This document shows positions 4,265 to 64,000 of a stretch of 64,000 nucleotides of DNA, piece by piece. The number at the start of each line of letters is the position of its first letter. Within the stretch, counting starts at the first letter, position 1. The stretch is taken from positions 1,426,001 through 1,490,000 of the forward strand of contig JBLDXI010000046.1 of the NCBI GenBank assembly GCA_047495785.1, given 5' to 3'. The translations under genes were made by a program, and so were the position numbers. A model generated the notes under the pieces. That model searched no databases, was not told the DNA's origin, and saw nothing but the letters and a program-made list of their open reading frames with translations. The DNA comes from Lepidodermella squamata (lineage: Eukaryota > Animalia > Gastrotricha).

Positions 4265-6324
4265 TCAATCGTCAGACGCAAATGAGTCATTGCGCTGTTT
4301 TTTACGCTGCGGAATCACAACATGAGATCGCGGCTGCGACGCGTCGTCCTCGTCGCTCGAACTGTCCTCAGCGCCCAGCTCACTGGCGCCGCTGTTCGAC
4401 GCCGAATCCGAGCCGGAACTCGACGAGCCGCTGCCACTTTCCGCCGAGGAATGCTTCCGCTTATTTTTACCAGCCTTCTTTTTCAACAGTTTCTTCTTGC
4501 TCTTCGCTTTTTCAGGCGATGAAGCAGAGCTGGCGGATGATGACGAGCTGCCAGATTCACTCGAAGTGCTGCCGGAATTTGAAGACGAAGAGCTCGATTG
4601 TGACGAACTGGATTCAGAGCCAGACGAATCACTTTCTTCACTCGAACTAGATTTCGCCTCCTCCGCTTTTTTCCTAAAAAAAATTGATAAATAGAAATAA
4701 TATTAATATTGAGAGCAGATTTAATTGGATGCCGTGACGAAGGTTCATCAATCAGCCTTTTCTATTGAAATTGTTCCGAGAATTTTTTCTATTTCTACTG
4801 CCGTTACAAAGCGTTCTCATGGCCGCCCCGAATGGCATAGATCTACGACTGGATTTACGACTGAAAGCAAGTGCTTTAGATGCTACCATGCAGCCATAAG
4901 TCGCAAAAAACCAGTTGTGCCCGAACTTGGAAACCCAAGGAGACTCGGCCGATTTACTCAGCCATGGCGCTGCATTTTCTGATTCAGTCACTGATTGGAG
5001 GGTTATACTCGAAACCATATACTCGTTGTGATCTATGCCTCCCCTGACTGACATACTTTTACCAAAACGTCCACCTTAAACTATTTCTCGCTCATTTTTC
5101 GCACTTTTCCACGGCCTGTGCCAACTCCACCTCGGCTCTTCCTATTTTCTTCTTTTTTCTTTAACAAGTTCGTTTTGTTATTGAAAATAACGATGGATGA
5201 CACCTTCATTTATACAGATTTACTTGATTACCAACTTCATAACGGCCAGTTCGCTGAATCTTTGGGCCTTAGAAGCAATTTCGCTCCTCGTTTGAAAACT
5301 AAACTCGAGCGATTTCTAATTGCATTATCAAATACAGCTCTCGAGAGTGGGAAGTTCAGCGAGTCATTTTCTCCAGCTATGCAGCTTTACTCATAGGGCG
5401 CTCTTGTATAATGCAAATTTTGCATAAACTTGACTTCAAAGCATATAAGGTGCACGCGGTATATAATTTTCATCCAGGCGATGCCCTGAAGTTTGTGAAT
5501 GGTTTTTGCAACAGCGTGCTACATTGATCAACAATTTCCCGTTCAATTTCTCATGTAATTTTAGATGTCGAAGAGATCGGCTTTTCTAGAATGGCCCTGA
5601 ATAATCTTCAACCTTCCCGCCCATCCGACGAATACGTGTTTTACGTCATTGGTTCTCATGGGGGTATCTCAAATCTGAAGTATATAAGGATCCCAAGCCC
5701 ACAACAATGGCTCAACTTCAAAACCGGATAATTCACACGTCCCAACAAATTACCCCTGAAATGCTTGCGCGTGTTCGTGGAAGTTTGATTTCCCGATTAC
5801 TTGCATCTCGAGAGAGAAATGGAGAGGGTCCCAAATTTCGAAATTTCACATGAAATTTCACTGCTTATACCCATTTTCAACAATTGGCCATCGCCCCAAT
5901 ACTCTCAAGCCCTTTACTCCATTTACGTGTTATACCATGAATATAATGTGCGTAATTTTTATCAACACTACCTATGTAAATCTGGATTTATTGTTTTGTC
6001 CTACCTGTTATCAGCAATTTTCTTCAGCACCGCTTGTTCCGCCATTTGTTTCATCATTTGCGTTCGAGTAGGCCTCGATAGATATTTCGGCTTAGCTTTA
6101 CATTCATACGTCCAATGCCCGACCTTCAAATCAGACCGAAAAATTAGTGAAACAAAATTTGACCTAGATAAAATAGACACTGACCTCGAGGCATTTCTGG
6201 CATTTGAACGAGCCTCGTTTTTCAGATTCTCTATACAAAATTCATTTTTGATCATGTTCAGCTTTGAAGTCGAAGTTTCTTACATCTTTTTATCTCGGGA
6301 AACCAGGAGCGAAGTTGGATCCAT
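4265..6324 (-). CDS. ZCCHC10: Zinc-knuckle CCHC protein with Ser/Lys-rich tail (ZCCHC10/SREK1IP1 family), 4 exons
   Basis: The spliced product MDPTSLLVSRDKKI-ESEKRGSFKCQKCLE-VGHWTYECKAKPKYLSRPTRT... carries the CQKCLExGHWTYEC signature. The last exon (4673-4265) is Ser-rich. All three introns are GT-AG and phase-consistent. Confidence 0.85.
5460..5845 (+). mobile_element. Degenerate Tc1/mariner-superfamily transposase remnant in ZCCHC10 intron 3
   Basis: WGYLKSEVYKDPKPTTMAQLQNRIIHTSQQITPEMLARVRGSLISRL...NG resembles the C-terminal part of DDD/DDE transposases. The upstream catalytic region is broken by stops and frameshifts. Confidence 0.7.
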
Positions 6325-6608
6325 TTATCAAATAATATACACTATAATAATAATCAAAAAAATTTAACCAATTTTCAGGTCGATCTGTTTTATTTTCATC
6401 ACTATAGCAAACGCAAAGAGGTTTTCACCATCGAAATTATTTTATTAATCATTCGGATTTCACGTAGTCGATATCCGGGTTCAAAAAGGAGTGCTGGTAC
6501 TTCTCGCTTAATACAACTGAATATTACTAAACAAGGGCGCAATTTGCAGAACTAATTTCAGTGTTTTAAGGTGGCGTATTTCTCATATTTTTGACCTGAT
6601 TAGTCGGT

Positions 6609-6931
6609 TTAATGGTGGGCAGGCGGTCCACCTCCTGGAGGCTTGCGGATGCTACGTTCGTGGTCCTCGTTAGCCCAGGTATAAAGGAGGAAAACTGATA
6701 TCATAGCTAATGAATATTTTAAAACTGAAAACATAGCTTATTTAATTAGAGAAAGAAATTACGTGGCGCAACGTAGAAAACGTTACGGTTGAATTTCGTC
6801 CACCATTTCTGCGCCCAGTGGCTCAAAAAGCCGGACGGGAAAACCTTCAGTTCATACGGCGAAAGCCTGTACCAGATGAGGCCGCGGACGTGCGAGCCGA
6901 AAAGTTGATCGTGCTTAGCGCCGCCTCCCAT
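6609..6931 (-). CDS. UQCRQ: Cytochrome bc1 complex subunit 8 (QCR8), exons 6931-6763 and 6706-6609
   Basis: VRGLIWYRLSPYELKVF...FYVAPPMISVFLLYTWANEDHERSIRK matches the UcrQ family. 56-nt GT-AG intron. Confidence 0.88.
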
Positions 6932-6990
6932 TTTCACTCAGAATTGGTAAAAATCTATCGAAATTCAGCAAATTAATTAGTATAACAATG

Positions 6991-8017
6991 TTACAACGAT
7001 TTCTTTGTCAAAGATTTTAAAACGTTGACTGGATAGTCGTCGCTTGGCACCAAATTATCAGGCAGGGCAAGATCTTCCGGCAAATATTCGATATTACGCA
7101 GGTACAACCCGCAAGGAGACACCGTCGGAGTCGGGTGAGGGATGTTATTTGGCACTTCTACGCCACGCAACAATGTTTCGAGGGTACTAATTGGAATCCT
7201 TTTACCAGCAATTTGAAGTAAACAGCCAACCATTCGGCGAATCTTGATTGAAAACGAAAAGTAACGAAGGCCAACATGACTAGAGAAAATAACTTGCTTG
7301 GTGATAGAAAAAAGAATTAGAACGAAATAAAATGTCATAAAATTGAACATCGTTTTCAACTTGAAACGGCCAGTACTCGCCCAGTATCGGGCGAGACTTG
7401 ACAACGCGAACCGACATGGGGCGAGTAGCTGCTCCGCCCTTTTCTTGCAACGACTCGCTTGTCGTGAAGAGCTTGAACGAGTGAAAACCGTTAAAAGTCT
7501 CAGCAGCTTTCATGAATAACGCTTCGTCGAATTCGCCCGAGTAGACTAAACAACGATTGACCTCAGTCGCGGTCATAGCAGCTAACATTCCGACTTGGCT
7601 CTTAGAAGGATTCGTCACGGCGAGACGATATAAGTATTCGCGGGAAACAGCTGCAGCCCTGCAATTGAAATCAGGCGCTACCCGCAAGGCGCGCCAAACA
7701 CGAATGGGCTCGTTGTGGCGATCAAAAACCGAATTCAAACCAAACATGAACATTTTAGGGTCAGGCTCCCGAGATTTTCGCATGTCTTCTTTCGAGTAAA
7801 CCGCATCAAAGTGCAAAGTATTGGCTAAAGCATGAACGCCAGCATCGGTACGAGATGCTAGGGTCAACTTGCCCCTTTCGATGAGTTTTATGTAATCAAA
7901 AGCTTTCTCAATAACACCTTGCACCGTTCTGACGAGCTGCGTACCAGCCATAACTTGCTGCTGGGAGCCGCTAAAGCTGGAACCGATATAAGAGAAGAAA
8001 AGCATATATCGACCCAT
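6991..8017 (-). CDS. PUSL1: TruA-family tRNA pseudouridine synthase-like 1, exons 8017-7298 and 7242-6991
   Basis: RY...SYIGSSFSGSQ, catalytic SRTDAGVHA, REYLYRL, SFFYHQ|IRRMVG and PCGLYL. Joining requires a 55-nt GC-AG intron. Confidence 0.9.
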
Positions 8018-44889: not shown

Positions 44890-46230
44890 TTATGGCATGA
44901 AAGCACTTTCACGGCAATTTGACTCCTTGATCCACCAATCGGCTATATTGATAGATTTTGGCGACTCGATTTGCGGCAATTTTGAGCTCAGATAATTGCA
45001 AATTGCGCACAGAGGGCGGAATTGAAGATTTCGAACAGTTCGAAAACGGCGTTTCCACTCGAAAAATGAATTGTATATTTCAACATTTCCGGCAACCTAG
45101 AACAAAAAAACGCAATAAAAATTAACGTTGCAATTTTTTGGAATATTTATTATTTAAATTTTAAATTTTTCGAAATTAAATTTTAATTTTTAATTTTTTG
45201 AAAAAATTCTAGCTTAAAAATTTCAATTTTTAATTTCTGAAAAATTCAATTACATTTCAGTTTTCAAAAATTTTACCGTCATTAAATGGTCGGCCAGCTC
45301 AGCGACATTGGCGAATTTTCCGACATCAATGAAAGACCCTTCCGGGGCCTCTCTCGAATAATTCGCCCCGCCAAGAACAACAGGTATCAAATCGTAGTCT
45401 AGAATGCGGTAGAATTTCTCCGTCACATAATCGCGGCAAATCGAATTTTCAAACGACGCATAGAAAATGTACCGATCTTTGAGTTCATCCAAACACGCCA
45501 CTGAATCATGCGATGTGCCACCACAAATTAGGCCATTCGGACTGCACCCACCGTAAATATCGACCGTAAGCCCTGCGGCTTCGAGGGCATTCAAAACTTC
45601 GAGCCGATGCGAAACATCGTCGCAATTGCTTATAACCGCGAAAATGTGTCGCTTTTTACTTAGCAATTCCGAGGTCAAAGCAGTGTTGGCGCCAGAATAA
45701 GGCGGATCGATTTCGATGAAGCCGCCGTACTGGACAGCTGGTATGTAAATATCTGAATCGTGTCTGTAAGAAGCAGTTCGATTGAAAAACGCCGACAATC
45801 GAGACCATTTGACCCCGAAATCAAGCCGTTCTAGGGTCGCCGGGGTTTCGAGCGATAGAAAAATCCAAATTTGACGCGGATGCCTTTCGTGGTATTTCAA
45901 ACTGCGCAAACCGGGCAGAAGGTCAGTACGATGGGCGTGGAAAACGAGGGCATCGACTTGCGAGACGATTTGCGGGTAATTTCTGCATGATTCGGGCAAA
46001 TAAATGCAACGATTCGAACAATTAACGCCGATAACATCTTTCGAGAGATAATTTTCGCCGAAATAACTAGTCGCCATTAAAATTATTCTTTCATCGCCAG
46101 ATTTTTCAGCCAATATCCTTTCGCAAGAATCGATCGGAAAATCATCTCCGAAAATTTCGAAAAAATTCAGCAAAATTAACGAAGCAACACAAACGGTTAT
46201 TCCAGTTATAAAAATCAATTTATTTGCCAT
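44890..46230 (-). CDS. GT10 alpha-1,3-fucosyltransferase (exons 46230-45277, 45096-44890)
   Basis: Type II anchor; DALVFH; FNRTASYRHDSDI; FucT motif YIFYASFENSICRDYVTEKFY; last exon YNSFFEWK...LCAIC...WW...C. Confidence 0.92.
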
Positions 46231-46261
46231 TAAAAAAACTAAGCAAAAAAATTTCGATTTA

Positions 46262-49200
46262 TTAATTGTGAGCAAGGCGTTGATGAATTTTCGCAAGAAT
46301 ATCTTCACTAGCTAGGCAGCAGTTATTTTCGAGGGTGAATTGCACAAAGTCAGACCAGCTAGGGTCGGCCATCAAAACAAACGGGTTCGCAATAATAACT
46401 AGCAGCGATTTCGCCCTAGTTAGCGCGACATTCATCCGCTTCGGGTTCGCGAGGAAGCCCAGTGCTTGTCGAATATTGGCCTGTTCATTCGATCGAACAA
46501 TCGATAGGATAATAACAGTTCGCTCCTGGCCCTGGAATTCTTCGACAGTGCCGACTTTAACGCGGGGTATACCGGCCCGGTCCATGAAGAGGCGGATTTT
46601 TTCGATTTGCTTACGGTACGGGGTGATGACGCCGATTTCATCATCAGTGACTAATTTGCCGTCAAAACCGTCGACCATCAATTTTTTCAGGTACGAAATG
46701 ACGATCATAATTTCGTGGCAGTTGAACCATGACATAGATTCGCCCTCCCGCATGTCTTTGCCTTGAACAGCGTGTAAAATTAACGGAATTTTCGGATTCG
46801 GAAGAAACTCTCGAGATTCAGCTGATGACGATACGAAGAGATTTTGTACTGCCTTAGGGGCATTTGCGACTAATTCGTTGTCGTAGAAGAGCCGCGATGA
46901 GACTTGGAATAACGCAGGGTGGCTGCGGTAGTTGTTAACGAGTTTCGTGGCGACCAACGGATTATAGCCGCCTGCCACGCCGGCCTTAGAAAATCGGACT
47001 TCGTCCCGGGCGTAGACTGGTAGTTTCGAAAGGCGCTCGAGATAAGAGACTTGAAGCCCAAACACATTGCTGAGGCGAGATTCTAAAATCGGACCAAGTT
47101 GCTGAGGATCACCGGCTAAAACAATCTAACGAAACATTTTTCAAGATTTTTAAGGCATAATGCAGAGCAAAAAATGCTAACCTGGCCATTGCGACAGTCG
47201 ACAAAGTTTATAGGAATAAGCAGTTCCGGCTCGGTTGCATGCCCGGCTTCGTCGATGACAACGTGCGTGAACGAACCGGCTTTCACATTCGCCGTGTACA
47301 TTTGGCCACTGGTCGTGCACGTCGACACAATCAAACGGCACCTAAAAAAGTATTAAGGCGCATGTTAAAATTAGGGGGAAATGATTTAAAACTATATCAT
47401 ATACATATACATATTTCCTGAATCAGAAAACAACGCACCAAATTTGAGGTTTTTAACCTTGAACCTATGTTATGACTTTGAAGTTTGATGGCGAAAGTTT
47501 TTCCCTGGCTATCGGAATTCGATGTCAAACGTATTCTCTTGGAAAATGAACAAATGAAGCGGCATTGGAATATCTCACAAAAAATCGACAATCTCGACTA
47601 TTATAGCCAAGGTTTAATGCATGTATGGAACCAGCTTTTGGTGACTACTCTAAAGGATTTCGGTTTCAAACAATGTGAGCTCGACCCTTGCCTTTTCCTA
47701 AAAGAAAGTTGCTTCTTAGCTACTCATGTCGACGCACAGTAAAATCGACCGAATTGAGTTTTCCAGGCTTTCTACCGTCAATTTTCATAGGTAATAACTC
47801 AACCGGACCCAAACTCACACCAGGTTATAATATCAAAAAACAGAGATTAAAAGCTTTATATCTGAATTTTAAGCACAAAACTGAGCATAAAAGAGGAAGT
47901 ATTCAACCTTGAGAGTAGTTTTTACATAATTTTTCTGATAGGCGAATTATAGAATGAGAAGGACGTGCATCGGGGTATTTGCCCACGCCAGTCCCCTGAA
48001 TGAAGTGAAAAATAGCCATCACGCTGCAAATTTGTGTGTGCGAGTCGGCAATGGGGAGGAGGTCAGAATGGCCGAAATGTATTTATATACGCCTGACCTT
48101 TACAAAGACCTGTCGTACGGCTGCACAGTCCAGCTTCAGGATGGCCGTGTGACTCAGGGGGATGGCATTGCACGGCCCCGATTTCAATTCAGATATCGAC
48201 ATTGTTCAAGATAAGAAATTTACTGCGGCTAATCGAGTTCAACTAACCAAGTGTCGACAATATGCAGCTTCGAACATGCGAGAAACTTCGAACCTTCTTC
48301 GTACTACTTTGGAGCGAGAATTTTGCAGTGTCAAATTACAAGAGTTTTTCTTTTTCAATTTGCTGTATCATTTTGGTTTACGAGGTCGTGAGAATCTACG
48401 CGAATTTGCGCCCAATACTTCTCAATTTGGTATTGAAGAAGGTCATGAGTTTGGCACTCAGAGCTATTCATCCTAACGCGAGACGCTACAGCTCGCTAAT
48501 GATGAGGTACTCGCCGGCGTTGCATTTAAAAGGCCCAGCCGCATAATCCATGATCCAAGATTCGAATGCTCTGGTTCTTCCCAGTGTTCGAACTTAACAA
48601 AGAGTGGTTGCCATCGAATACGAGGGTGGTCAGTCGGAGAGCGCATAGTATGTTTTGATGAAAGGAAAAATATCGTAACTACCAATACCGATTATCGATT
48701 TTGTCATCTTTCGATGGACGAAATCGGCTGCATGCGATCTGTGCCTACACGATCTGGTCACACGATCGGTGTGGTCATGGAGAAACTTTCTCAGTTAAGT
48801 TTTGTAGTAAGATTCTCTTCAACAAATTTGCTAATAAACGTCGCGGATTGCCCCCTAACGAATAAAAGGAAACCTACATTCGTCCACGATCCCATCTTCC
48901 AAACCATGGAATTATCGTAGACGTCCACCTGTTCCGCCCATTTTTCTGAGTTGCATGGGTCCCGCGGAAATATGATCTCCTCCGCCTCAAACTTGATCCC
49001 TTCTACGATCGTTCAAATCGAATAAATTGCGACTTCGAGCCTTTATTACTTATGCTATGCCTCATCTTGACTATGCTTCTTCAGTTTATTCGCCTTATCT
49101 TCTGACAGTTATCAGCCGCCTTGAATCGGTTCTACACAATTTTTTAAAACGTTTAGCTGCATATAAAATGACGGATTACAAGCTGCTTCTCAACAAATTC

Positions 49201-52200: not shown

Positions 52201-52833
52201 ATGTCAGACGGGCCACGGGCTGGGGGCGTCAGTTTTCTCACGTCGTTGATTTTCCCATTCATCAGCAGCAAATTGTCAGCATTTGAATTCAGCTTAACGG
52301 CATCGGGTGCCAATTTGTTTTTAGAACTGCTCTTTTCATCATCCCAATCCTCGTCATTGCATAAATCAGGTTGACGGTTCGCCGGTTCGACCCGGATGCA
52401 TTTGTTCCCCTCCAGCCAATACCGAACGAAATCACCAATCTATGAAATAAATCGTACGTTAATTTATTGTTATTGGAATATTGAATCCTTACTTTCATAT
52501 CAGACACAGCTTGAGTTGTGTCGTGCAGCATTTTATTGAATTGGATTCTGTTGTCGATGATCATTCGGTCCAATTCAACACGGGTAACAAAGCCCGTTCG
52601 AGTGATTTGCATGTTGCTTAACATCAGTTCCTCCTCATTCGGCCGAATGCGACCTATAGACAAACAACGTATTTTAGCAATATTCAACTATTCCGTTCTC
52701 AACTCAAACCTTCTTTCAAAAATTCGTTGATGGCTTCTTCGCAGTCCCAGACAGGAGAGAGAAATTCATTCTCCTCATCGCCCCTTTCGGAATCAGTGGC
52801 ATTAACGGTAGAAAACCAATTACCAAAAGGCAT
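46262..52833 (-). CDS. MOV10L1: MOV10L1/Armitage-like UPF1-family RNA helicase (5 exons; 2.8-kb intron 3 at about 50139-47342)
   Basis: PYLLYGPPGTGKT, CAPSNSAAD, DEAGH, LAGDPQQLGP, NYRSH, GVITPYRKQ, GTVEEFQGQE, RMNVALTRAK. A long N-terminal OB-fold-like region typical of MOV10L1. Confidence 0.88.
47590..47740 (+). mobile_element. Ty1/copia reverse transcriptase fragment
   Basis: WNQLLVTTLKDFGFKQCELDPCLF...LATHVD is the RVT_2 segment leading to a degenerate YVDD. Confidence 0.7.
48162..48476 (+). mobile_element. Crypton-like tyrosine recombinase (DUF3504-type) fragment
   Basis: DIVQDKKFTAANR...LQEFFFFNLLYHFGLRGRENLR matches the FGxRGRE motif of Crypton/DUF3504 proteins. Degraded. Confidence 0.6.
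49020..49570 (+). mobile_element. 5'-truncated LINE (CR1/L2-like) ORF2 3' end with (AAAT)n tail
   Basis: AFITYAMPHLDYASSVYSPY...RLESV...SLENRR..DL..FK, then frameshifted FNRRFINLWNSLP, followed by aaataaataaataaaataaataaat. Confidence 0.8.
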
Positions 52834-55076
52834 TCTAAAAATTGGATAATTTCAAAATTAGACTAATTTTCTAATTGCATCTCTTAAATATACATTACCA
52901 CGAGCTATATCCTGGCTTCATAATTTTTTTAATCAAGGAGAATTGCTTCAGATGGCACACAGAATTACCGAAATCTGCAGGAGTATAACTCCAGTTTCTT
53001 GCATTGGTTTGAAGTGTTTTACTCCAAAGCAAGAAAAAACAGCTCAAAGCAACAAAATAACGGCACTTTTAAAAGCCATGCTCTATGACTTCTGCAACCC
53101 GGGAAAATTATATTCCTTTTTCGCTGCCAGGGCCATCTGATTTTACTACGCTGACCCCGAATCAGTCTCCATAATATTTAAATGAGACTAGAAAAGACGG
53201 GAGCGCTAACGTGCGCCCCGTATCTATTACTAACTATATCGTCGCTAATAAAAAGTTGGATGTGACAAATGATGTGTCGGATGTCTACGGCGTTCAATTT
53301 CAACTGAGGTTTTGCTGGGTGTCGTTACTGAAATACAAGCGTCTATTATCCAATGCCTGGTCAGGTGACTTGAAATGTTGAACACTTTCATTTTGGAGAA
53401 CTTGTTCTATAAAGATTGTTGATACGGTTGGCACGGCTGTCGTTAAACACTGATACTTTCTGAGTTTGAGCCTGCTATGGAAAGCCCAGTTGATCCTAGC
53501 ATGGGTATACGTATCCCGGGCTTCGATAATGAGCTTGGCAAAGATGCTTTCAAGCAAGGCGCGGTAAAAATACTAAAATCCCGAAGCCAGCGAAGAATAA
53601 TGCACGAATAAAGCTATTACTGGAATGCATTCCAAAACTCTTCTGTGCGATGGCGGTCGAAGGGCGTGAACAAAATTTCAATGTTCTATAACATGACCCA
53701 GTCCGTTATGCACTTTACGTCAGGTCGTTAGCTTTAATTGACAGCAAATATTAAGAACCATTGCTTTGCAGATGCTTCGTGTGCCATTTTACGTTTACAG
53801 AAAAGTGTACTTCAGCAAATTTTCCCAAACCAGATTTTTCCAAGACGCTCAGTACCATAAAGCGCTTCCACCCAGTCATGTATGTAATTCATTGCAATAC
53901 GTCCATTGTATTAGCCATTAAAAGATATCAGGTTTTTCTCCGTTCCTTCGTTGAAATTTGACATGGAAATTCATCGTCAGTTTATTTGTGATCGAATTTT
54001 CGATTCAGAGCGACAAATGCTTCAAGGAGCGGCCGTCCGAGACAGTGTTTATCCAGATGTAAGACGGTAACTTTCAACCAAAGGCGTGGAATCTGAATTC
54101 AAAACTATTGGAACGCGGCCAACTGTGGGCTTGATCTTTCTCTAGTTCAGTTACAATAACTACACAAATTATGTCCGAGTAAAAGAAACTCGCAATATCG
54201 ACGTCATGATGTCCGACGAGGAACACGGGGAGGGCCAAGAAGAGCCATTGGCTCAGCCCGTCGGCCGAGGCCAACCACAACAACCGCAGCCGAAAAACCT
54301 GCTGTGGCCACATCACCAAAGACAACCCGTTGGACAGGAGACCACAACTAAGGCCAAAGCCAAATCCAAGGTCAAGCGGCTCTGGACCTCCAAAAGCGAA
54401 TGCAACATCAGAACGGCAACGAACAAACCGGAACAACCCTGCGCGGCAATGGAAAGAACGATTTTCGCGGGCTTGTATCAATAATGTTTGAACGTTTTTA
54501 AATACAATTATTGCAATTAGTAATAAAATAAGCTTAGTAGTGTAATTTGATAACCGGCAATAGCTTTTCCCGAAAATTCTTTTGAAAATGAAGGCGGGAA
54601 GGCGGCGCAAGGAGCGCGCGCGAGCAAAAACCCGCTGACTGACTGACTGACTGACTTCACCCTGACTTCACGCCCGTCCGTCACGTCCGTCTCCCGTCAC
54701 TTGTCCACTACCGGGGTGTTGACAGTTTTTTGTCGCCAAGCCGCCCATTACTCACTAAAAATCACTCCAATTTCGAGTCATCATTTTTTGGCGCGGGGCT
54801 GGGCTTCGTCTAATCAGTTTAAGTCCGTCGGCATCTTCATTTTTTTTAATTGTCAATTGTTTACTCTTTTGAGGGCTGAGGGGTCTTCATCGCTGATGCA
54901 CTTTTGCTTGAACCCTTCCTCCTTCCTGAACTTTTCAAGTTCTAGTTTTCCACAGCGTCATAACCGTTACCTGGGAATTACGAATCACCCATCACCCCTA
55001 TCCTGTAGTACATTAGATTACATAAATAGTCAGTGAAAAGATCCCGAGTTAATAAACTACTAAACACTCGTCGCGT

Positions 55077-56663
55077 ATGGATAACATTATTGAGCAAGCA
55101 TTTATTGGCGGCGAATTTGTTGATGCCAGTGATGGAGGCAGATACGAGGGTAAGAAAATGTTTAGATTTGCGTTGGAACTTGGCCTATAAATCCCGCTTC
55201 AATACTATACTTTCAGTAATTAACCCAAGCACTGGATCTCGGATTGGTTCAGTGCCGGATATGTCCTCTGCTGACACTGAATTGGCCATAAATTCAGCGT
55301 ATAATGCATTTCAAAGCTACCGTAATATTTTGGCAAAAGTTTGTACCTTGGGAATTATTTTAATTACTTTCACCGAAATCACTGATAGGAAAGAGCAGTC
55401 TTTCTCGAGAGGATTCGCGATATACTAACCGCAAATGCGGATAACTATGCCAGGGTACTTACTTGCGAGATGGGTAAGCCATTGGCTGAAGCGAAAGCGG
55501 AATTTCTGTTCGCTGCCTCTTTTATGGATTGGTACGCCGGCGAAGCTCGTCGGACATACGGTGATTTCGCTCCAACTCCTTTTCCTAATCGTCGCATGCT
55601 GTTCGTTAAACAACCGGTCGGCGTTGTCGGTGCAATTACGCCCTGGAACTTCCCCATTGGCATGATGGCGCGTAAAGCAGGCGCCGCACTGGCTGCTGGA
55701 TGCACTATCGTTATTAAGCCAGCCGAAGACACGCCATTTTCTGCGCTCATTTTTGCCAAGGTTTGCCAAGAAGCGGGTGTGCCGCCAGGAGTCGTAAACA
55801 TCGTCACATCTAGCCGGAATAATGCCATTACGATCGGCCGCGTCCTTTGTGAGAGTCATCTGGTCGCTAAAATATCATTTACCGGCTCCTCAGTCGTGGG
55901 AAAATTGTTAATGAAGCAAGCAGCAGAAACTATGAAGCGTTTTTCCGGTGAGCTCGGAGGAAACGCTCCATTCATAGTTTTTAATTCTGCTAAAATCACC
56001 GATGCTGTTTCCGGCTTGATCGCCAACAAGTTTCGCGCATCAGGACAAACATGTGTCTGTGCGAATAGAATTTTCGTTCAGGAGGCAGTGTTCGAAACTT
56101 TCACGGAGTCCTTGGTTGCAGCTGTTCAACATCAACTGAAAGTTGGAGATGGATTGAGCCCAGGCGTCAACCAGGGCCCGTTGATTAACAGGCGAGCTGT
56201 TGAAAAGGTTCAAAGCCTAGTTGATGACGCTGTTTCCAAAGGCGCTAAGTTGTTGTGTGGTGGCAAGGTTCATCCTGTTCTGGGAGGAAATTTTTTCGAA
56301 CCCACTGTATTGTCGGGAGTTGAGCCCGAAATGAAAATATTTAGCGAGGAAATATTTGGCCCCGTCGCGAGCATTATCAAGTTTAAGACAGAGGAGGAAG
56401 TCATCCGCTTGGCTAATGATACCAGATCCGGCCTAGCGTCTTACTTTTACTCCCAAAATTACTCCCAGGTATGGCGTGTCGCCGAAAAGTTGGAATGTGG
56501 CATGGTTTCGATCAACGAACCGATGCTTTCAAGCGCGGAAATGCCGTTCGGAGGCATTAAAGAGTCTGGAATAGGCCGAGAGGGATCCAAGTACGGTCTT
56601 GATGATTACATGCACATCAAATATATTTGCTTCGGTGGTCTTGAGATGCAAGCCTCAGATTGA
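55077..56663 (+). CDS. ALDH5A1: Succinate-semialdehyde dehydrogenase (exons 55077-55149, 55218-55338, 55389-56663)
   Basis: EMGKPLAEA, EARRTYGD, ITPWNFP, FTGS, ELGGNAPF, KFRASGQTCVCANR, EEIFGP and PFGGIKESGIGREGSKYG. Confidence 0.92.
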
Positions 56664-56816
56664 AGTTATTCATTAATTTATAGGAAAGCCCGCTTGCTCC
56701 TTCGATTACTTTTGATTTTCACTCCCCTGATAAATTGACCGTCATCTTGTTTTATTTTTGATCATTTATTTTGCCTCCTTTTCCTATATAGATAGTATTA
56801 AAATTTTGAAGTTGGC

Positions 56817-59021
56817 ATGGACTTTGGGTCGCAGGCTCCTGAGGACCCTGAGTTGAAAAATGTGATCGACAAATTGGCGCAGTTTGTTGCCAGGAACGGC
56901 GCTGATTTCGAGCGAATGACAAAAGAAAAACAGAAAAACAATCCGAAGTTCGGCTTCCTCTTTGGCGGTGATTATTATAATTACTATCAATACCGCCTTA
57001 CAACAGAGCAAGCGATACTTCGAAAACAAGGAGTCGGTCCGTACCCGCCTCCAGGAATGCCATATCCTCCAAATGGTCCGCCTCCTCACTTCGGCGCCCC
57101 TCCGCCGTCGTTTGTACCTCCGTGGACTAACCGACCCCCTCCCCCTGGTATGCCTATGAGTATGCCACCCCCACCAATGGGTGGCCCACCACCGATGCCA
57201 CCTCACGGACCGCCGCCTCATATTCATCTTCAACAGCTGCAGCGTCAATTGGACGATTTGCAAGAGCAAATGAACTCGTCCGACCGAAATCTCCATGCTC
57301 AGCGAGATGCTATAATGAGTCAGAAACAAGCTGAACTCGACCAGATTCGGATCGATTTACCTCGACGAATCCTTCACAATCTTTCCAACAACACCGGAAT
57401 TGCATTGGAAGAATTCGACGCCGTAGTTCTGCCGTTGATAGACGCGTGTACTAAGGATAACATGGGCAATGCTAAATCATGGCTACTGTCTCGTTTAAGC
57501 ACCCCGGAGCACTACGATTTATTCACGCTGTTCCTTTTCAATCGCTCGACCATGTTGTCTAGTCAAGGCCCACCGAAATTCGATGGGTGTTTGCACCTCG
57601 TATACCTGGTCAACGATTTGCTGCATCACGCGGTTAAAAAGCAAATCGAAGGCCTACGTCTCGCTCTTCGTCGAGTTATCCCTGCGTTATTCAGCGAAAC
57701 ACTAGTGATATCAAACGGGGAGGAAGATAAACTTGCGAAATTGTTCAAATTGATCAACTTATGGCGGCAAAACGGCTACTTGGACGAGCAGGTTTTGCAG
57801 TTATTGGAGGATACTAACAACCGAGGAGCTGGGCGAAACTGGTTTTTGAATGAAGTTATGCACACCATGTTACCCCATGGTGACCCTCATTTCGGCCCAA
57901 ATTGTGCGGATATCGAGAATCGTTATCATCACCAGTACAGCCAATTGGAGCAGCAAAATAACGAATATGCGGCTCATATTCACGGCCAAATGCAAAATAT
58001 TAGGCAAAGTGAGCTTTTGAGGGATCTAATGATTGAGCAACATTTTTGTGATTTTTTCCAGTGATTCAAAACGTTCAAATGCAGATGCAGGGACCACCGC
58101 CGCCATTCCCACCTTTCCCACCTCAATCAGGCCCTCCCCCTCCGATGATGGGCGGACCTCCTCCAAACGTACCCTGGTCGTGTGAGTTTCTTTTAATTTC
58201 ATCCAAAAAAGCCTATTGATTTTCGGAGATCATCAAAAATTGAAATTTATTTCCGCTAAGTAACTGAATGAAATTTTTGGTCTTTTCAGCTCCTCCTCCG
58301 CCATTACTTCCGCCGCCTCAAAGCTTGCCTCCACCGTTGTATGGTGGAAATGTACCGCCCCCGCTGTTAGGACCGCCACCAACAGATCCGCACTTGCCTG
58401 TTGATACTTCGCGCCCTCCGCCGTCACTTTTCAGCGGTCCACCGCCGGGTTTTATGCCGCCTCAACGCCAACCGACTCCACCTCCTCCAGCCCCTTATTA
58501 CGACCTGCCGGCTGGTTTGATCGTCCCGCTGGTCAAACTCGAGGATAACAGCTATGAGCCGATAGGTATGTCTTTTTGACCAATAATTTTATATTTTTAA
58601 TGTTTTATTTTTATTAATTTCAGACCCTTCAAAAATTCGCCTGCCCCATCCTTGTCCGCCAACCGAGCGATTATTAGCCGCAGTCGAGGCGTTTTACGCC
58701 CCTCCTAGTCATGATAACCCTCGTGATTCAGAAGGCTGGGAACGATTGGGGTTGTACGAATTTTTCCAGGCCAAAGAACGCGCCGCTCGAGAGGCGAGAG
58801 CGCGAAAACGCGCTGAAGAGCGAGATCTTCGCCGTCGATCTCGATCTCGTTCCTCTTCACCGCGATCACGGTCGAGAAGTTCTTCGAGTTCGAGATCTAC
58901 CTCAGGCTCGCCGGTTCCTTACCTGAGATCGAGTAGAAGTCGAAGTCGCTCACCGCCGCCACAGGCCGCTCATAAATGGGCAAAACACAATAGCTCATCA
59001 TCATCTAGTTCTTCAAAATAA
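56817..59021 (+). CDS. CHERP: Calcium homeostasis ER protein / U2-associated splicing factor (SURP, CID, Pro-rich, DUF819, RS), 4 exons
   Basis: VIDKLAQFVARNG..FE.MT.EKQK.NPKF.FLFGG (SURP), LHLVYLVNDLLHH (CID), PYYDLPAGL, ERLLAAVEAFY...EGWE.LGLYEFF and an RS tail. Confidence 0.93.
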
Positions 59022-59157
59022 TGATGCAAAAAATTGTGATTTATTGATATAAAATTCCGCTCAATTTTTTTAAAAGCAACGTGATAAACTTGAAATTGAA
59101 AAATCCACCTTAAACATTCTTCTTTTCTAGATTTTTCGGTTGAAAAATTACTGAAAA

Positions 59158-62100
59158 ATGTATAAGGCGCAGGAAATGGATTACGAGAACGATGACGACG
59201 AGATCAACCCGGAAATGTGGCAGGAGGCGTGCTGGGTTGTTATCAGTGCGTATTTCGACGAAAAAGGTCTCGTACGCCAGCAGTTGGACTCTTTCGATCA
59301 GTTTATCCAGACTTCGGTTCAGAAAATCGTCGCCGATACACCGCCGATTGAGTTGCAATCTGAAGCTCAATATTCTGACGGTAGACTTGAAACTCCCACA
59401 AGGTAATTTTCAAATTATTGAAAAGCTAAATCTGTGTAGATTTACTAATCATAAAAAATTCGATTATAAAATTTTGGATTTTTATTAATTTGATATTCGT
59501 TTTTCTCATTTTTCAGGTACACCGTACGATTCGAGCAAATTTACATTTCAAAGCCGACAAATTGGGAAAAAGACGGCTCTCCTATTCCAGTAACACCAAA
59601 CGAAGCCCGTCTTCGAAATTTGACCTACGCCGCCCCGCTTTTCGTCGACATCCGAAAATCAGTGCAGCGATCAGGGGAGGACGTGCCTAAGGACACAGTC
59701 GAAAAACAGGTTTATATCGGCAAAATCCCGATCATGCTTCGATCGACTTATTGCCTGTTATCGCGGCTCGAAGACCGAGAATTGTACGAATTCAACGAAT
59801 GCCCTCTTGACCCCGGCGGGTATTTCGTCATCAACGGCTCTGAGAAAGTTTTGATCGCCCAGGAGAAAATGGCGACTAACAACGTGTATGTCTTCCAGCA
59901 GAAGGATGGAAAATTCGCGTATAAATGCGAAATTCGATCGTGCATCGAACACTCTAGTCGACCGACTTCATCCCTTTCTATCAATATGTTGGCTCGAAGT
60001 GGCCAGGGCATTAAACGCGGCACTTTAGGCCAGCCCATTGTCGCGGTTCTGCCGTATATTAAACAGGAAATTCACGTTATTATCGTTTTCCGAGCGTTGG
60101 GTTTCGTCTCAGATCGAGACATTCTTGAGCACATTATCTACGACTTTGACGACCAAGAAATGATGGAGATGTTGAAGCCGAGTTTGGACGAGGCTTTCGT
60201 CATTCAGGAGCAAGGAGTTGCCTTGAATTTCATCGGCGCGAGAGGTGCTCGGCCTGGTGTAAGTCGCGAGCGGCGTATTCGTTACGCAAAGGAAATTTTA
60301 CAAAAGGAAGTCCTACCCCACGTTGGTGTTTCGGAATTTTGCGAAACGAAAAAGGCCTATTTCCTCGGCTATATGGTGCATCGGCTACTCCTCGCCTCGC
60401 TCGGCCGTCGACAGTGCGACGATCGCGATCACTACGGCAATAAGCGTCTTGACTTGGCTGGGCCGTTGATGGCCTATTTGTTCCGCGGGCTGTTTCGCAA
60501 TTTGACGAAGGAGTTCCGCATGTATGCACAGAAGTACATTGATCGCGGCAAGGAGTTCAGTGTGCCACTGGCTATCAAAACGCGCATCATCACCGATGGT
60601 CTCAAATATTCACTTGCTACCGGCAACTGGGGTGACCAGAAGAAGGCAAGATTTTTTGCTATTTTCCAACCATTTTTAGACTTCGCTAATTTCGCTGTTA
60701 TTTCATACATTTTTTATATCTAAAACTTAAGAAAAACATTTGACATTCAATTTCACCGAATAATTAAAAATTTACTGGATAAAACCCGGAAAAATCCGAA
60801 AGTTCGGTAATTATCGGTATATTTTACCCGGAATGGCCCATTTGCTGATCATTTTTATTCCTTTTTCTAGTTCAGTTTAAAAGAGTGTAATAGGTACATA
60901 GGCGTCAAATCATGATGATCATTTCGAGCAAATAAAATGTCCACCATAAAATTCCATTAACATAATTTTTCGAGTGAAAAGGTAAGTTGTTCATTCGGCG
61001 AGCAACTTGATTTTTGGTGGACAATCATTCGTCTTCGAAATCTCTACCGTAATCCGTTACAACTTTTAACGGGTAAAAGTTTGAACATTTCACGCAAATC
61101 AGCTTTTCTCTGAAACCATGGAGATTTACCGCTTGGGAATTTTACAGAATATAGGTCTCATTGAGATCTAACATTATGCTAAGTTTCATCAACACAGCCC
61201 TCACAGTCTCTTCCTTTATAATTCCCGAAAAAAACAACGTTTTTGGTCTACTTGGGCCTCGACATGTCAGCCAAATGTGCATACTTCTGTTGGGGCATTT
61301 AGAAACATTTGCGGCCACATGGCTCCAAGATAGAAATGCGAAAATGTAAAGATGGATTCTAAATTAAAAAGAAGCTCAATCCTGAATACATCGGAATAAG
61401 TGTCCAGTAATTCCGCTCGGTTTCACCTTGTGCACCGGGTCAATCGGACATGTCATAAGTACACGGTCCATAGTATGTTGGCCGATGCGATTACTTTTTG
61501 GTCCTAATTTTCTAATTCATTTCTTTTGCAAAATTTCACAATGTTTCAAGCTTTTTGTTTTGAAGGCTGATTAATTATTAATTATTTTCTAGGCCCATTT
61601 GGCTCGAGCTGGTGTGTCTCAGGTGTTGAATCGACTGACCTATGTGTCGACGCTTTCCCATTTGCGCCGCCTCAACTCGCCAATTAACCGCGACGGCAAA
61701 CTCGCCCGCCCCCGCCAGCTCCATAACACCCACTGGGGCATGATTTGCCCTGCCGAGACACCCGAAGGCCACGCTGTCGGTCTCGTGAAAAACTTGGCCA
61801 TGATGTCGTACATTTCCGTCGGTTCCGAAGCTGCGCCGATTCTTGAGTTTTTGGAAGAATGGTCCATGGAATCGCTGGAAGAAATTGCGCCCTCGTCGAT
61901 TGCGGACGCGACTAAAATTTTCGTCAACGGTGCTTGGGCTGGTATTCATCGTGAACCTGATGTTCTGATGAACACACTCAGAAAACTGCGTCGCCAAATG
62001 GATATCGTCGTATCCGAGGTTCGATTTTTTAATTGGAAACTTTCGTGTTGCAAAATTCGATTTTTGCGCCTTCAATTTTTCGAAAATTGAAAATGTCACT

Positions 62101-63821
62101 TTTTAAATTCGAATTCAATTTTTTTAAATCCAAAACTTGAAACATTTTTGAATTGACGACTTTATTCGCAGGTTTCGATGATTCGCGACATCCGCGAGCG
62201 AGAAATTCGAATTTACACCGACGCTGGTCGTATTTCGCGGCCACTTCTCATCGCTCAAAACCAGCGATTACTGCTGAAACGGCACCACGTTCAAGACCTG
62301 AAAATGCGCAGCCGGACGAATTTTGGCTGGCAAGAACTGCTGCAATCAGGCGTGGTCGAGTACATTGACTGCATGGAAGAAGAGACCATCATGTGCGCTA
62401 TGACGCCCGAAGACTTACTCCCAGACGGCGTCTACTGCTCGTCGTACACGCACTGCGAAATCCACCCGTCGATGATTTTGGGCGTCTGCGCGTCGATCAT
62501 TCCGTTTCCCGATCACAACCAGTCTCCGCGTAACACCTACCAGTCTGCTATGGGTAAACAGGCCCTTGGGGTCTACGTCACAAATTTCCACGTTCGCATG
62601 GACACGCTTGCCCATGTGCTGTACTACCCTCAGAAGCCTCTGGCCACCACTCGAGCTATGGAATATTTGCGTTTCGCCGAGTTGCCGGCTGGTATCAATG
62701 CCATTGCAGCTATTGCTTCATACACAGGCAAGTTATTTAGTTTCGGCCCAAAATTAAGTTTACAGCGCCCAGTTAGAGGCTAAAGCAAACTAAATTACGA
62801 TTTGTTGACCCCAACTCGTAGTCGACTAGGCAGCAGAGGAGGTAGACCCTAGCACTACTGAAGTGTAAATCTGCTCCAGTGTCAGCTCCCGTTAGAGAAG
62901 TACTAAACATACGGCATCAGATCCGAATTTGTTTTCTGATATTTCTCTTTGCAAATCGTATATTTCGAGTTGAGCAACTATGTAATTGAATTTGTTTTTC
63001 TCGTCTTAGGCTACAACCAAGAAGATTCAGTCATTTTGAACGAATCAGCCGTTGATCGAGGCCTCTTCCGAACCTTTTTCTTGCGTTCTTTCAACGAAGC
63101 TGAAGCGTCTGTCGGCCTCGAGCAAGAAGAGCGCATCGAACGCCCGACTCGAAACGACACTCTGGGCATGAAAAATTCGTGCTACGACAAGTTGGAAGAA
63201 GACGGTATTGTCGCACCAGGCACTCGTGTTTCCGGCGATGACGTGCTTATCGGCAAAACCGTGACTCTACCGCCGGCTAACGATATGGGCGGAGTCGAAA
63301 ACACAATCGCTAAAAAATTCACGAAACGTGACGCGTCTGTCTACATGAAACACAGCGAGACTGGCATTGTCGACCAAGTCCTGATGACGATCAATTCCGA
63401 CGGTTTCCGTTTCGTGAAAGTCCGCGTTCGATCGGTTCGAATTCCGCAAATCGGCGACAAATTTGCGTCTCGCCACGGTCAAAAAGGTACGTGCGGCATG
63501 CGGTACCGCCAGGAAGACATGCCGTTCTCAGCCGAGGGCATTGCGCCCGATATCATCGTCAACCCTCACGCTATCCCGTCTCGCATGACAGTCGGGCATT
63601 TGATCGAGTGCCTGCAGTCGAAGGTTGCGTCGATGAAGGGCGAAATGGGCGATGCGACGCCGTTCAACGATACGGTCAACGTACAAAAAATCAGCAATCT
63701 ACTGCACGATTTCGGCTATCAGTGCCGCGGCAACGAGGTTCTGATGAACGGCTTCACTGGGCGCAAGTTGAATGTTCAAATCTACCTGGGTCCGACCTAT
63801 TACCAGCGTCTGCGTCACATG
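59158..63821 (+). CDS. POLR2B: RNA polymerase II second-largest subunit, 3'-partial (exons 59158-59402, 59517-60645, 61593-62018, 62172-62727, 63010-63821; continues beyond the window)
   Basis: [69 protein letters not shown] and [11 protein letters not shown]. Confidence 0.98.
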
Positions 63822-64000
63822 GTAAGTGCTTTTTGAGTGTTTCAATTTCATCGCGGGCGTAATTTCGTACGTACCCACAATTACAGTAGCAGAAGCATGG
63901 AATAGAATTAAAGTTTACTATCGAAATTTTTGCTTTAAGCGAGCAATATGTATCTGAAGTTGTCTACACTTGTTAGAACCGTGATGACGATTAAGAGTGA

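Follow-up and report, generated by a model that had tools for sequence, protein, structure and literature searches.

The question raised by this locus is whether three unrelated housekeeping genes, encoding succinate-semialdehyde dehydrogenase (SSADH), a CHERP-like protein and RPB2, are transcribed as one unit and then separated into individual messages by spliced-leader (SL) trans-splicing, or whether each is expressed on its own. The genes lie nose to tail on the plus strand at 55077-64000 of a 64,000-nt stretch of the genome of the gastrotrich Lepidodermella squamata (contig JBLDXI010000046.1, positions 1,426,001 to 1,490,000; hereafter the window). Judged from the sequence, we lean towards the first answer, namely that SSADH, CHERP and RPB2 form an operon resolved by spliced leaders and co-transcribed from a promoter upstream of SSADH. 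The more limited claim, that a leader is added in front of CHERP and RPB2 at positions 56792 and 59131 or a few bases from them, we regard as distinctly probable.

In the scheme we propose, RNA polymerase II (Pol II) would start upstream of SSADH, probably between 54.5 and 55.0 kb, and read through all three genes, and each upstream message would be cleaved and polyadenylated within the spacer that follows it. A leader of 30-31 nt, supplied by SL RNAs encoded in the spacer of the ribosomal DNA (rDNA), would be trans-spliced onto acceptors ending at 56791 (CHERP) and 59130 (RPB2). The products would be capped monocistronic mRNAs in which the 5' untranslated region (UTR) consists of the leader plus 25-27 nt.

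Each exon of the gene models was searched separately against profile libraries, and the identities assigned to the three genes in a preliminary description of this DNA hold, on the strength of Pfam and NCBIfam matches and of the names of homologues. The SSADH protein matches the Pfam family Aldedh (8e-143), and the best NCBIfam match of its last exon is TIGR01780 (succinate-semialdehyde dehydrogenase, 2e-168). The exons of the CHERP-like gene sum to 1986 nt in frame by exon arithmetic on the sequence, giving a protein of 661 aa with the Pfam domains Surp (5.5e-18), CID (2e-15) and DUF7819 (4.5e-30) and a C-terminus rich in arginine and serine. Its homologues carry the name calcium homeostasis endoplasmic reticulum protein (CHERP), the best match in the protein index being 50% identical; no G-patch was detected in any CHERP-like exon scanned, in contrast to several named CHERP homologues. 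RPB2 shows Pfam RNA_pol_Rpb2_1/2 in the scanned exons and 80% identity with the RPB2 of Lingula, and is present as a single copy; the only other genomic matches have identities of 35% and 43%, which is what one expects of the Pol III and Pol I paralogues. The 2.9-kb region as a whole is unique in the genome, with neither a second copy nor a haplotig. Introns of the window are short, with TTTTCAG-like acceptors. Two RPB2 introns apparently have GC donors, AAG/GCAAGA (60646-61592) and CAG/GCAAGT (62728-63009), together with normal AG acceptors, and the first of these measures 947 nt, as against the usual 50-110 nt here, and contains unexplained sequence.

The evidence for leader addition begins in the two spacers between these genes (Table 1). 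The preliminary description had put the spacers at 153 and 136 nt and the AG dinucleotides at 56790-91 and 59129-30, and every one of these coordinates is correct; the pyrimidine tract that it saw with an AG shortly before each ATG is likewise borne out, as a run of 12 bases in both cases. The distance from stop codon to acceptor is 127 nt between SSADH and CHERP and 108 nt between CHERP and RPB2. The predicted exons would start at 56792 and 59131, which is 25 nt before the ATG of CHERP and 27 nt before that of RPB2, and no ATG lies between either predicted acceptor and its start codon.

Motifs of this form (Y{12}N{0,4}AG) occur 7 times in the window when both strands are read (128 kb), a density of 0.055 per kb per strand, and the CHERP and RPB2 sites account for two of them. 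When each spacer was shuffled 5000 times with its dinucleotides preserved, the motif fell at most 45 nt from the ATG in 3.4% of the shuffles of spacer 1 and in 0.36% of those of spacer 2, which corresponds to a chance of ~1e-4 that both lie so close jointly; the motif was defined after the sites had been seen, and these rarity and shuffle figures are therefore generous. We do not attribute the acceptor motifs to chance, because there are merely seven of them in 128 kb and the shuffle frequencies are low. This bears on the plainest alternative, in which the genes are tightly packed in the ordinary way, each with a capped start in the spacer before it and no trans-splicing, and the pyrimidine-AG sequences are a by-product of T-rich 3'-end or promoter sequence. 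While T-rich spacers do favour pyrimidine runs somewhat, with the motif turning up anywhere in 9.9% of the spacer 1 shuffles, the joint chance and the scarcity of the motif in the window argue against such an origin, as do the SL-like genes and leader-headed transcripts of this genome (see below), and we consider ordinary packing quite improbable.

It is also important to consider whether the two acceptors could belong to cis-spliced introns within the 5' UTRs, with non-coding first exons located further upstream, for instance inside or before the preceding gene. Neither spacer contains a consensus splice donor, in agreement with the earlier observation that no strong one was obvious, and the GTs that are present read GTTATT, GTCATC and GTTTTA, and GTGATT and GTGATA. 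A first exon placed within the coding region of a neighbour would also be unusual, and this reading seems to us very improbable indeed.

The RPB2 acceptor at 59130 further ranks in the top 0.8% of all AGs of the window when scored with a crude cis-acceptor matrix built from 9 hand-read acceptors of SSADH, CHERP and RPB2; this matrix is noisy, real introns scoring negative in leave-one-out, and the pyrimidine-run test is preferred to it. A de novo intron finder, tried for a larger set of acceptors, returned mostly false positives and was dropped.

Table 1. Coordinates of the genes, spacers and candidate signals of the locus in the window, and of the two leaders in the rDNA unit L008.
Feature	Position	Strand	Remarks
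SSADH coding region	55077..56663	+	Exons 55077-55149, 55217-55338, 55389-56663; borders from sequence; start ATG at 55077, stop TGA at 56661-56663
CHERP-like coding region	56817..59021	+	Exons 56817-58008, 58062-58181, 58290-58565, 58624-59021; ATG at 56817-56819, stop TAA at 59019-59021
RPB2, 5' two-thirds	59158..64000	+	Exons 59158-59402, 59517-60645, 61593-62018, 62172-62727, 63010-about 63820; ATG at 59158-59160; gene continues past the window end
Spacer 1	56664..56816	+	153 nt, GC 0.31; has to hold the SSADH 3' UTR and the CHERP 5' end
Spacer 2	59022..59157	+	136 nt, GC 0.25
Predicted CHERP trans-splice acceptor	56774..56791	+	12-nt pyrimidine run 56774-56785, then ATAT, AG at 56790-91
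Predicted RPB2 trans-splice acceptor	59117..59130	+	12-nt pyrimidine run 59117-59128, AG at 59129-30 directly after
GATAAA (inside TGATAAATTGA)	56729..56734	+	Sole poly(A)-signal-like hexamer before the CHERP acceptor, 57 nt before exon start 56792; putative function
GATAAA (inside TGATAAACTTGA)	59083..59088	+	Candidate CHERP poly(A) signal, 42 nt before exon start 59131
GATATAAAAT	59046..59055	+	TATAAA (59048), poly(A)-signal variant or TATA-box-like element, 76 nt before the acceptor
GC-rich block	54590..54720		GC 0.58; candidate promoter of the cluster
Acceptor-like AGs after pyrimidine-rich stretches	54944..55008	+	54944-45, 54954-55, 55007-08; possible SSADH trans-splice sites
Leader A	L008:5147-5176	-	30 nt; end ...TTCTAAG, donor GTATGA
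Leader B	L008:5615-5645	-	31 nt; end ...CTGAG / ...TTTCTGAG, donor GTTAGT

Candidate genes for the leader are found in the rDNA, the unit of which is 8460 bp long and carries two SL-RNA-like genes beside the 5S gene in each spacer. In the unit L008 the 5S gene occupies 4802-4920 of the minus strand, between the large-subunit and small-subunit ribosomal RNA genes, and the SL-like genes are on the same strand (L008:4921-5700 region). The first nine bases of leaders A and B are identical. Both RNAs are predicted to fold with a single-stranded Sm-like site, AAUUUGA or UAUUUUAG, followed by a strong 3' hairpin, and in the predicted fold of leader A the donor lies in the 5' stem. The 3' halves of the two leaders have about 550 and 522 matches in the genome, compared with 0 for the reversed control; most of these matches are in rDNA arrays and dozens are dispersed. 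The 22-mer of nematode SL1 is absent from the genome at up to 2 mismatches. The Rfam SL1 model had no match in the genome either, in a search made without a working positive control and hence a weak blank, and an Rfam search of the window gave no matches. A motif of 26 nt, with the minus-strand sequence GTCGCCAATGACCAYGTGCATGTGGT, occurs twice in the same unit (L008:4953-4978 and 5478-5503), once ~35 nt upstream of 5S and once between the SL genes, and may be a promoter element for genes of small RNAs.

In the dispersed copies, similarity to the SL genes begins at the first bases of the leader, not at the promoter, and ends exactly at the donor. Beyond the donor position the copies run into unrelated sequences, mostly with reading frames resembling open reading frame (ORF) 1 of long interspersed nuclear elements (LINEs). 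The same element is headed by leader A or by leader B in different copies with an identical junction (L041 vs L071/L080; L061 vs L076/L077), from which it appears that leader-headed RNAs joined at the donor existed and were reverse-transcribed. Trans-splicing appears to be the simplest explanation of these leader-headed copies, which we take as supportive, not conclusive; elements could in principle have inserted at the donors of the two SL genes, with read-through and retrotransposition afterwards. Among the dispersed copies examined, there is no retrocopy of a host gene with a leader, all of them being LINE-like or without a recognisable host ORF. In one copy (L051), leader A is followed by ~30 nt, a variant resembling leader B and then the element. 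In these dispersed loci the junction is near base 1518.

The strength of an acceptor says nothing about where transcription starts, and CHERP and RPB2 might thus be trans-spliced but separately initiated, from promoters in the spacer or in the 3' portion of the preceding gene, with a short outron removed at 56791 and 59130. Most SL1-accepting monocistronic genes of nematodes would be a parallel, as would 'hybrid' operons. There is little room for an independent promoter, however, because 127 and 108 nt must accommodate the 3' UTR of the preceding gene together with its poly(A) site, with which such a promoter would overlap. Both spacers are in addition AT-rich (GC 0.25-0.31), in contrast to the block of high GC content found upstream of SSADH. 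On a related metagenome scaffold (L001:9058-9099), the CHERP start lies just 36 nt beyond the stop codon of a gene with an mTERF domain on the same strand, a distance that no separate promoter could explain, and an acceptor-like, pyrimidine-rich ...TTTTTTAATACGTATAG (...TATAG) lies 9 nt before the CHERP ATG. The CHERP of this scaffold is 52-82% identical to the one described here and, judging by this arrangement, is a tightly packed downstream gene too, with a different upstream partner. With these points set against those in its favour, which include two given in the next paragraph, we regard separate initiation, the main alternative, as rather unlikely. In a sequencing run that may be of RNA, 53% of the sequence words of the window are present; this is compatible with expressed exons and proves nothing.

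Several observations weigh against an operon resolved by spliced leaders. No canonical AATAAA or ATTAAA precedes the acceptor in either spacer, where GATAAA and TATAAA variants only are present. (Both GATAAA hexamers sit within TGATAAAYTTGA; a survey of poly(A) signals after other ORF ends of the window was uninformative, since most such ends are internal exons.) The TATA-like GATATAAAAT of spacer 2 would suit an internal RPB2 promoter and thus separate initiation, which is also favoured by the absence of the cluster from the relatives compared: neither SSADH-CHERP nor CHERP-RPB2 adjacency occurs in the CHERP contigs (L001, L082-L084) or the RPB2 contigs (L085-L089), and in the latter the gene before RPB2 is either divergent or far away. 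This non-conserved gene order is weak negative evidence, and the source organisms apart from L001 may be distant. The CHERP acceptor at 56791 scores poorly with the same crude nine-site matrix, and alternative AGs occur at 56794-95 and 56810-11, between this position and the CHERP ATG; because of the mediocre matrix score and these two further AGs, the position of the CHERP site is predicted with less precision than that of the RPB2 site. The folds of the SL RNAs are not more stable than shuffled sequence, with minimum free energy z-scores of -0.14 and +0.29. Finally, the leader-headed copies examined are mostly LINE-like, and insertion at an SL-gene donor could account for their leader.

Other junctions of the window resemble those between the three genes, which speaks for the operon reading. 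The tightest operon-like junction is that from MOV10L1 to a fucosyltransferase gene (46230-46265, minus strand), at which an AATAAA overlaps the stop codon, the acceptor ...TTTTTTTGCTTAG follows ~17 nt later and the ATG comes 31 nt after the stop. From PUSL1 to UQCRQ (6320-7000 region, minus strand) there are ~59 nt between stop and ATG, and from UQCRQ to ZCCHC10, also on the minus strand, an AATAAA at about 6441-6446 is followed by two acceptors of the form ...TATAG. Acceptors with this TATAG ending recur at candidate trans-splice sites, namely at the UQCRQ to ZCCHC10 junction, at 56791 and at L001:9087.

The operon suggested here would have much in common with the SL2/SL1 operons of the C. 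elegans type. For animal operons, the position of RPB2 as a downstream cistron would not in itself be unusual; those of nematodes are rich in housekeeping genes that serve transcription, splicing and translation. Shared features are the unrelated same-strand housekeeping genes about 100-150 nt apart, the unpaired TTTTCAG-like acceptor shortly before each downstream ATG, and SL RNA genes that occur in many copies in linkage with 5S rDNA. In Caenorhabditis, neighbouring cistrons are separated by a median of about 100-112 bp (PMC7986045). Differences are that neither leader A nor leader B is related to nematode SL1, that the phylum is another one, and that the distance from poly(A) signal to acceptor would be shorter here (about 40-55 nt).

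Gastrotrichs are placed near flatworms, and with the operons of flatworms and of the tunicates Ciona and Oikopleura the window shares very short spacers, such as the 31 nt between MOV10L1 and the fucosyltransferase gene, and the presence of one or few leaders without proven specialisation. At 153 and 136 nt, the spacers of the three-gene cluster exceed the length typical of tunicates, and the leaders of 30-31 nt may be compared with that of Ciona, which measures 16 nt. Intercistronic spacers have a median of about 1 bp in Ciona and measure about 31-57 bp in Oikopleura, and the leader of Schistosoma is 36 nt long (PMC7986045). As in other 5S-linked SL genes, the leader, donor and Sm-like site are repeated with 5S in a tandem array, whereas the location of the SL genes within the intergenic spacer of the 45S rDNA is less usual than classical 5S linkage. 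The dispersed copies are reminiscent of SL-associated retroelements (NeSL-1 and the CRE/SLACS/CZAR type) in being tied to the junction of leader and donor, and are unlike NeSL and CRE elements in that the complete leader forms their 5' end and they lie at a distance from the SL genes.

It would be tempting to go further and suppose that gastrotrichs possess a hitherto undescribed SL system in which leaders A and B are two classes specialised in the manner of nematode SL1 and SL2, in which case the sole RPB2 gene, and hence all Pol II transcription, would depend on proper formation of 3' ends as well as on class-specific trans-splicing of a polycistronic RNA starting at SSADH; we think this unlikely.

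The only paper returned by full-text literature searches combining gastrotrichs with spliced leaders or trans-splicing was an unrelated review, and neither spliced leaders, trans-splicing nor operons are mentioned in the paper on the L. squamata genome (PMC11660948). At the level of the phylum, the presence of spliced leaders in gastrotrichs thus seems to be unpublished. If the reading as an operon is true, the locus is an example of gastrotrich operons resolved by spliced-leader trans-splicing, and it bears on how often such trans-splicing and operons arose in animals. It would also matter for genome annotation, as such genes are fused or given wrong starts by gene finders. The locus offers a clean three-gene test case, with two clear predicted acceptors and the sole RPB2 gene as the last known cistron.

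Upstream of SSADH, the GC-rich block that may contain the promoter of the cluster includes a short (CTGA)n microsatellite at 54637-54657. Between the first of the acceptor-like AGs that follow this block and the SSADH start codon, no ATG occurs (54946 to 55077). SSADH had been described as lying head-to-head with MOV10L1, and the two genes are indeed divergent but not tightly head-to-head: the likely first-exon ATG of MOV10L1 is near 52833 on the minus strand, and the arrangement is a loose one because the two ATGs are ~2.2 kb apart with a possible small gene between them. This two-exon gene on the plus strand (54018-54484, intron 54059-54145) has no Pfam match and no usable protein-atlas match, and may or may not be real. 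Its product would be basic and of low complexity, and an AATAAA is present at 54521, 38 nt after its end.

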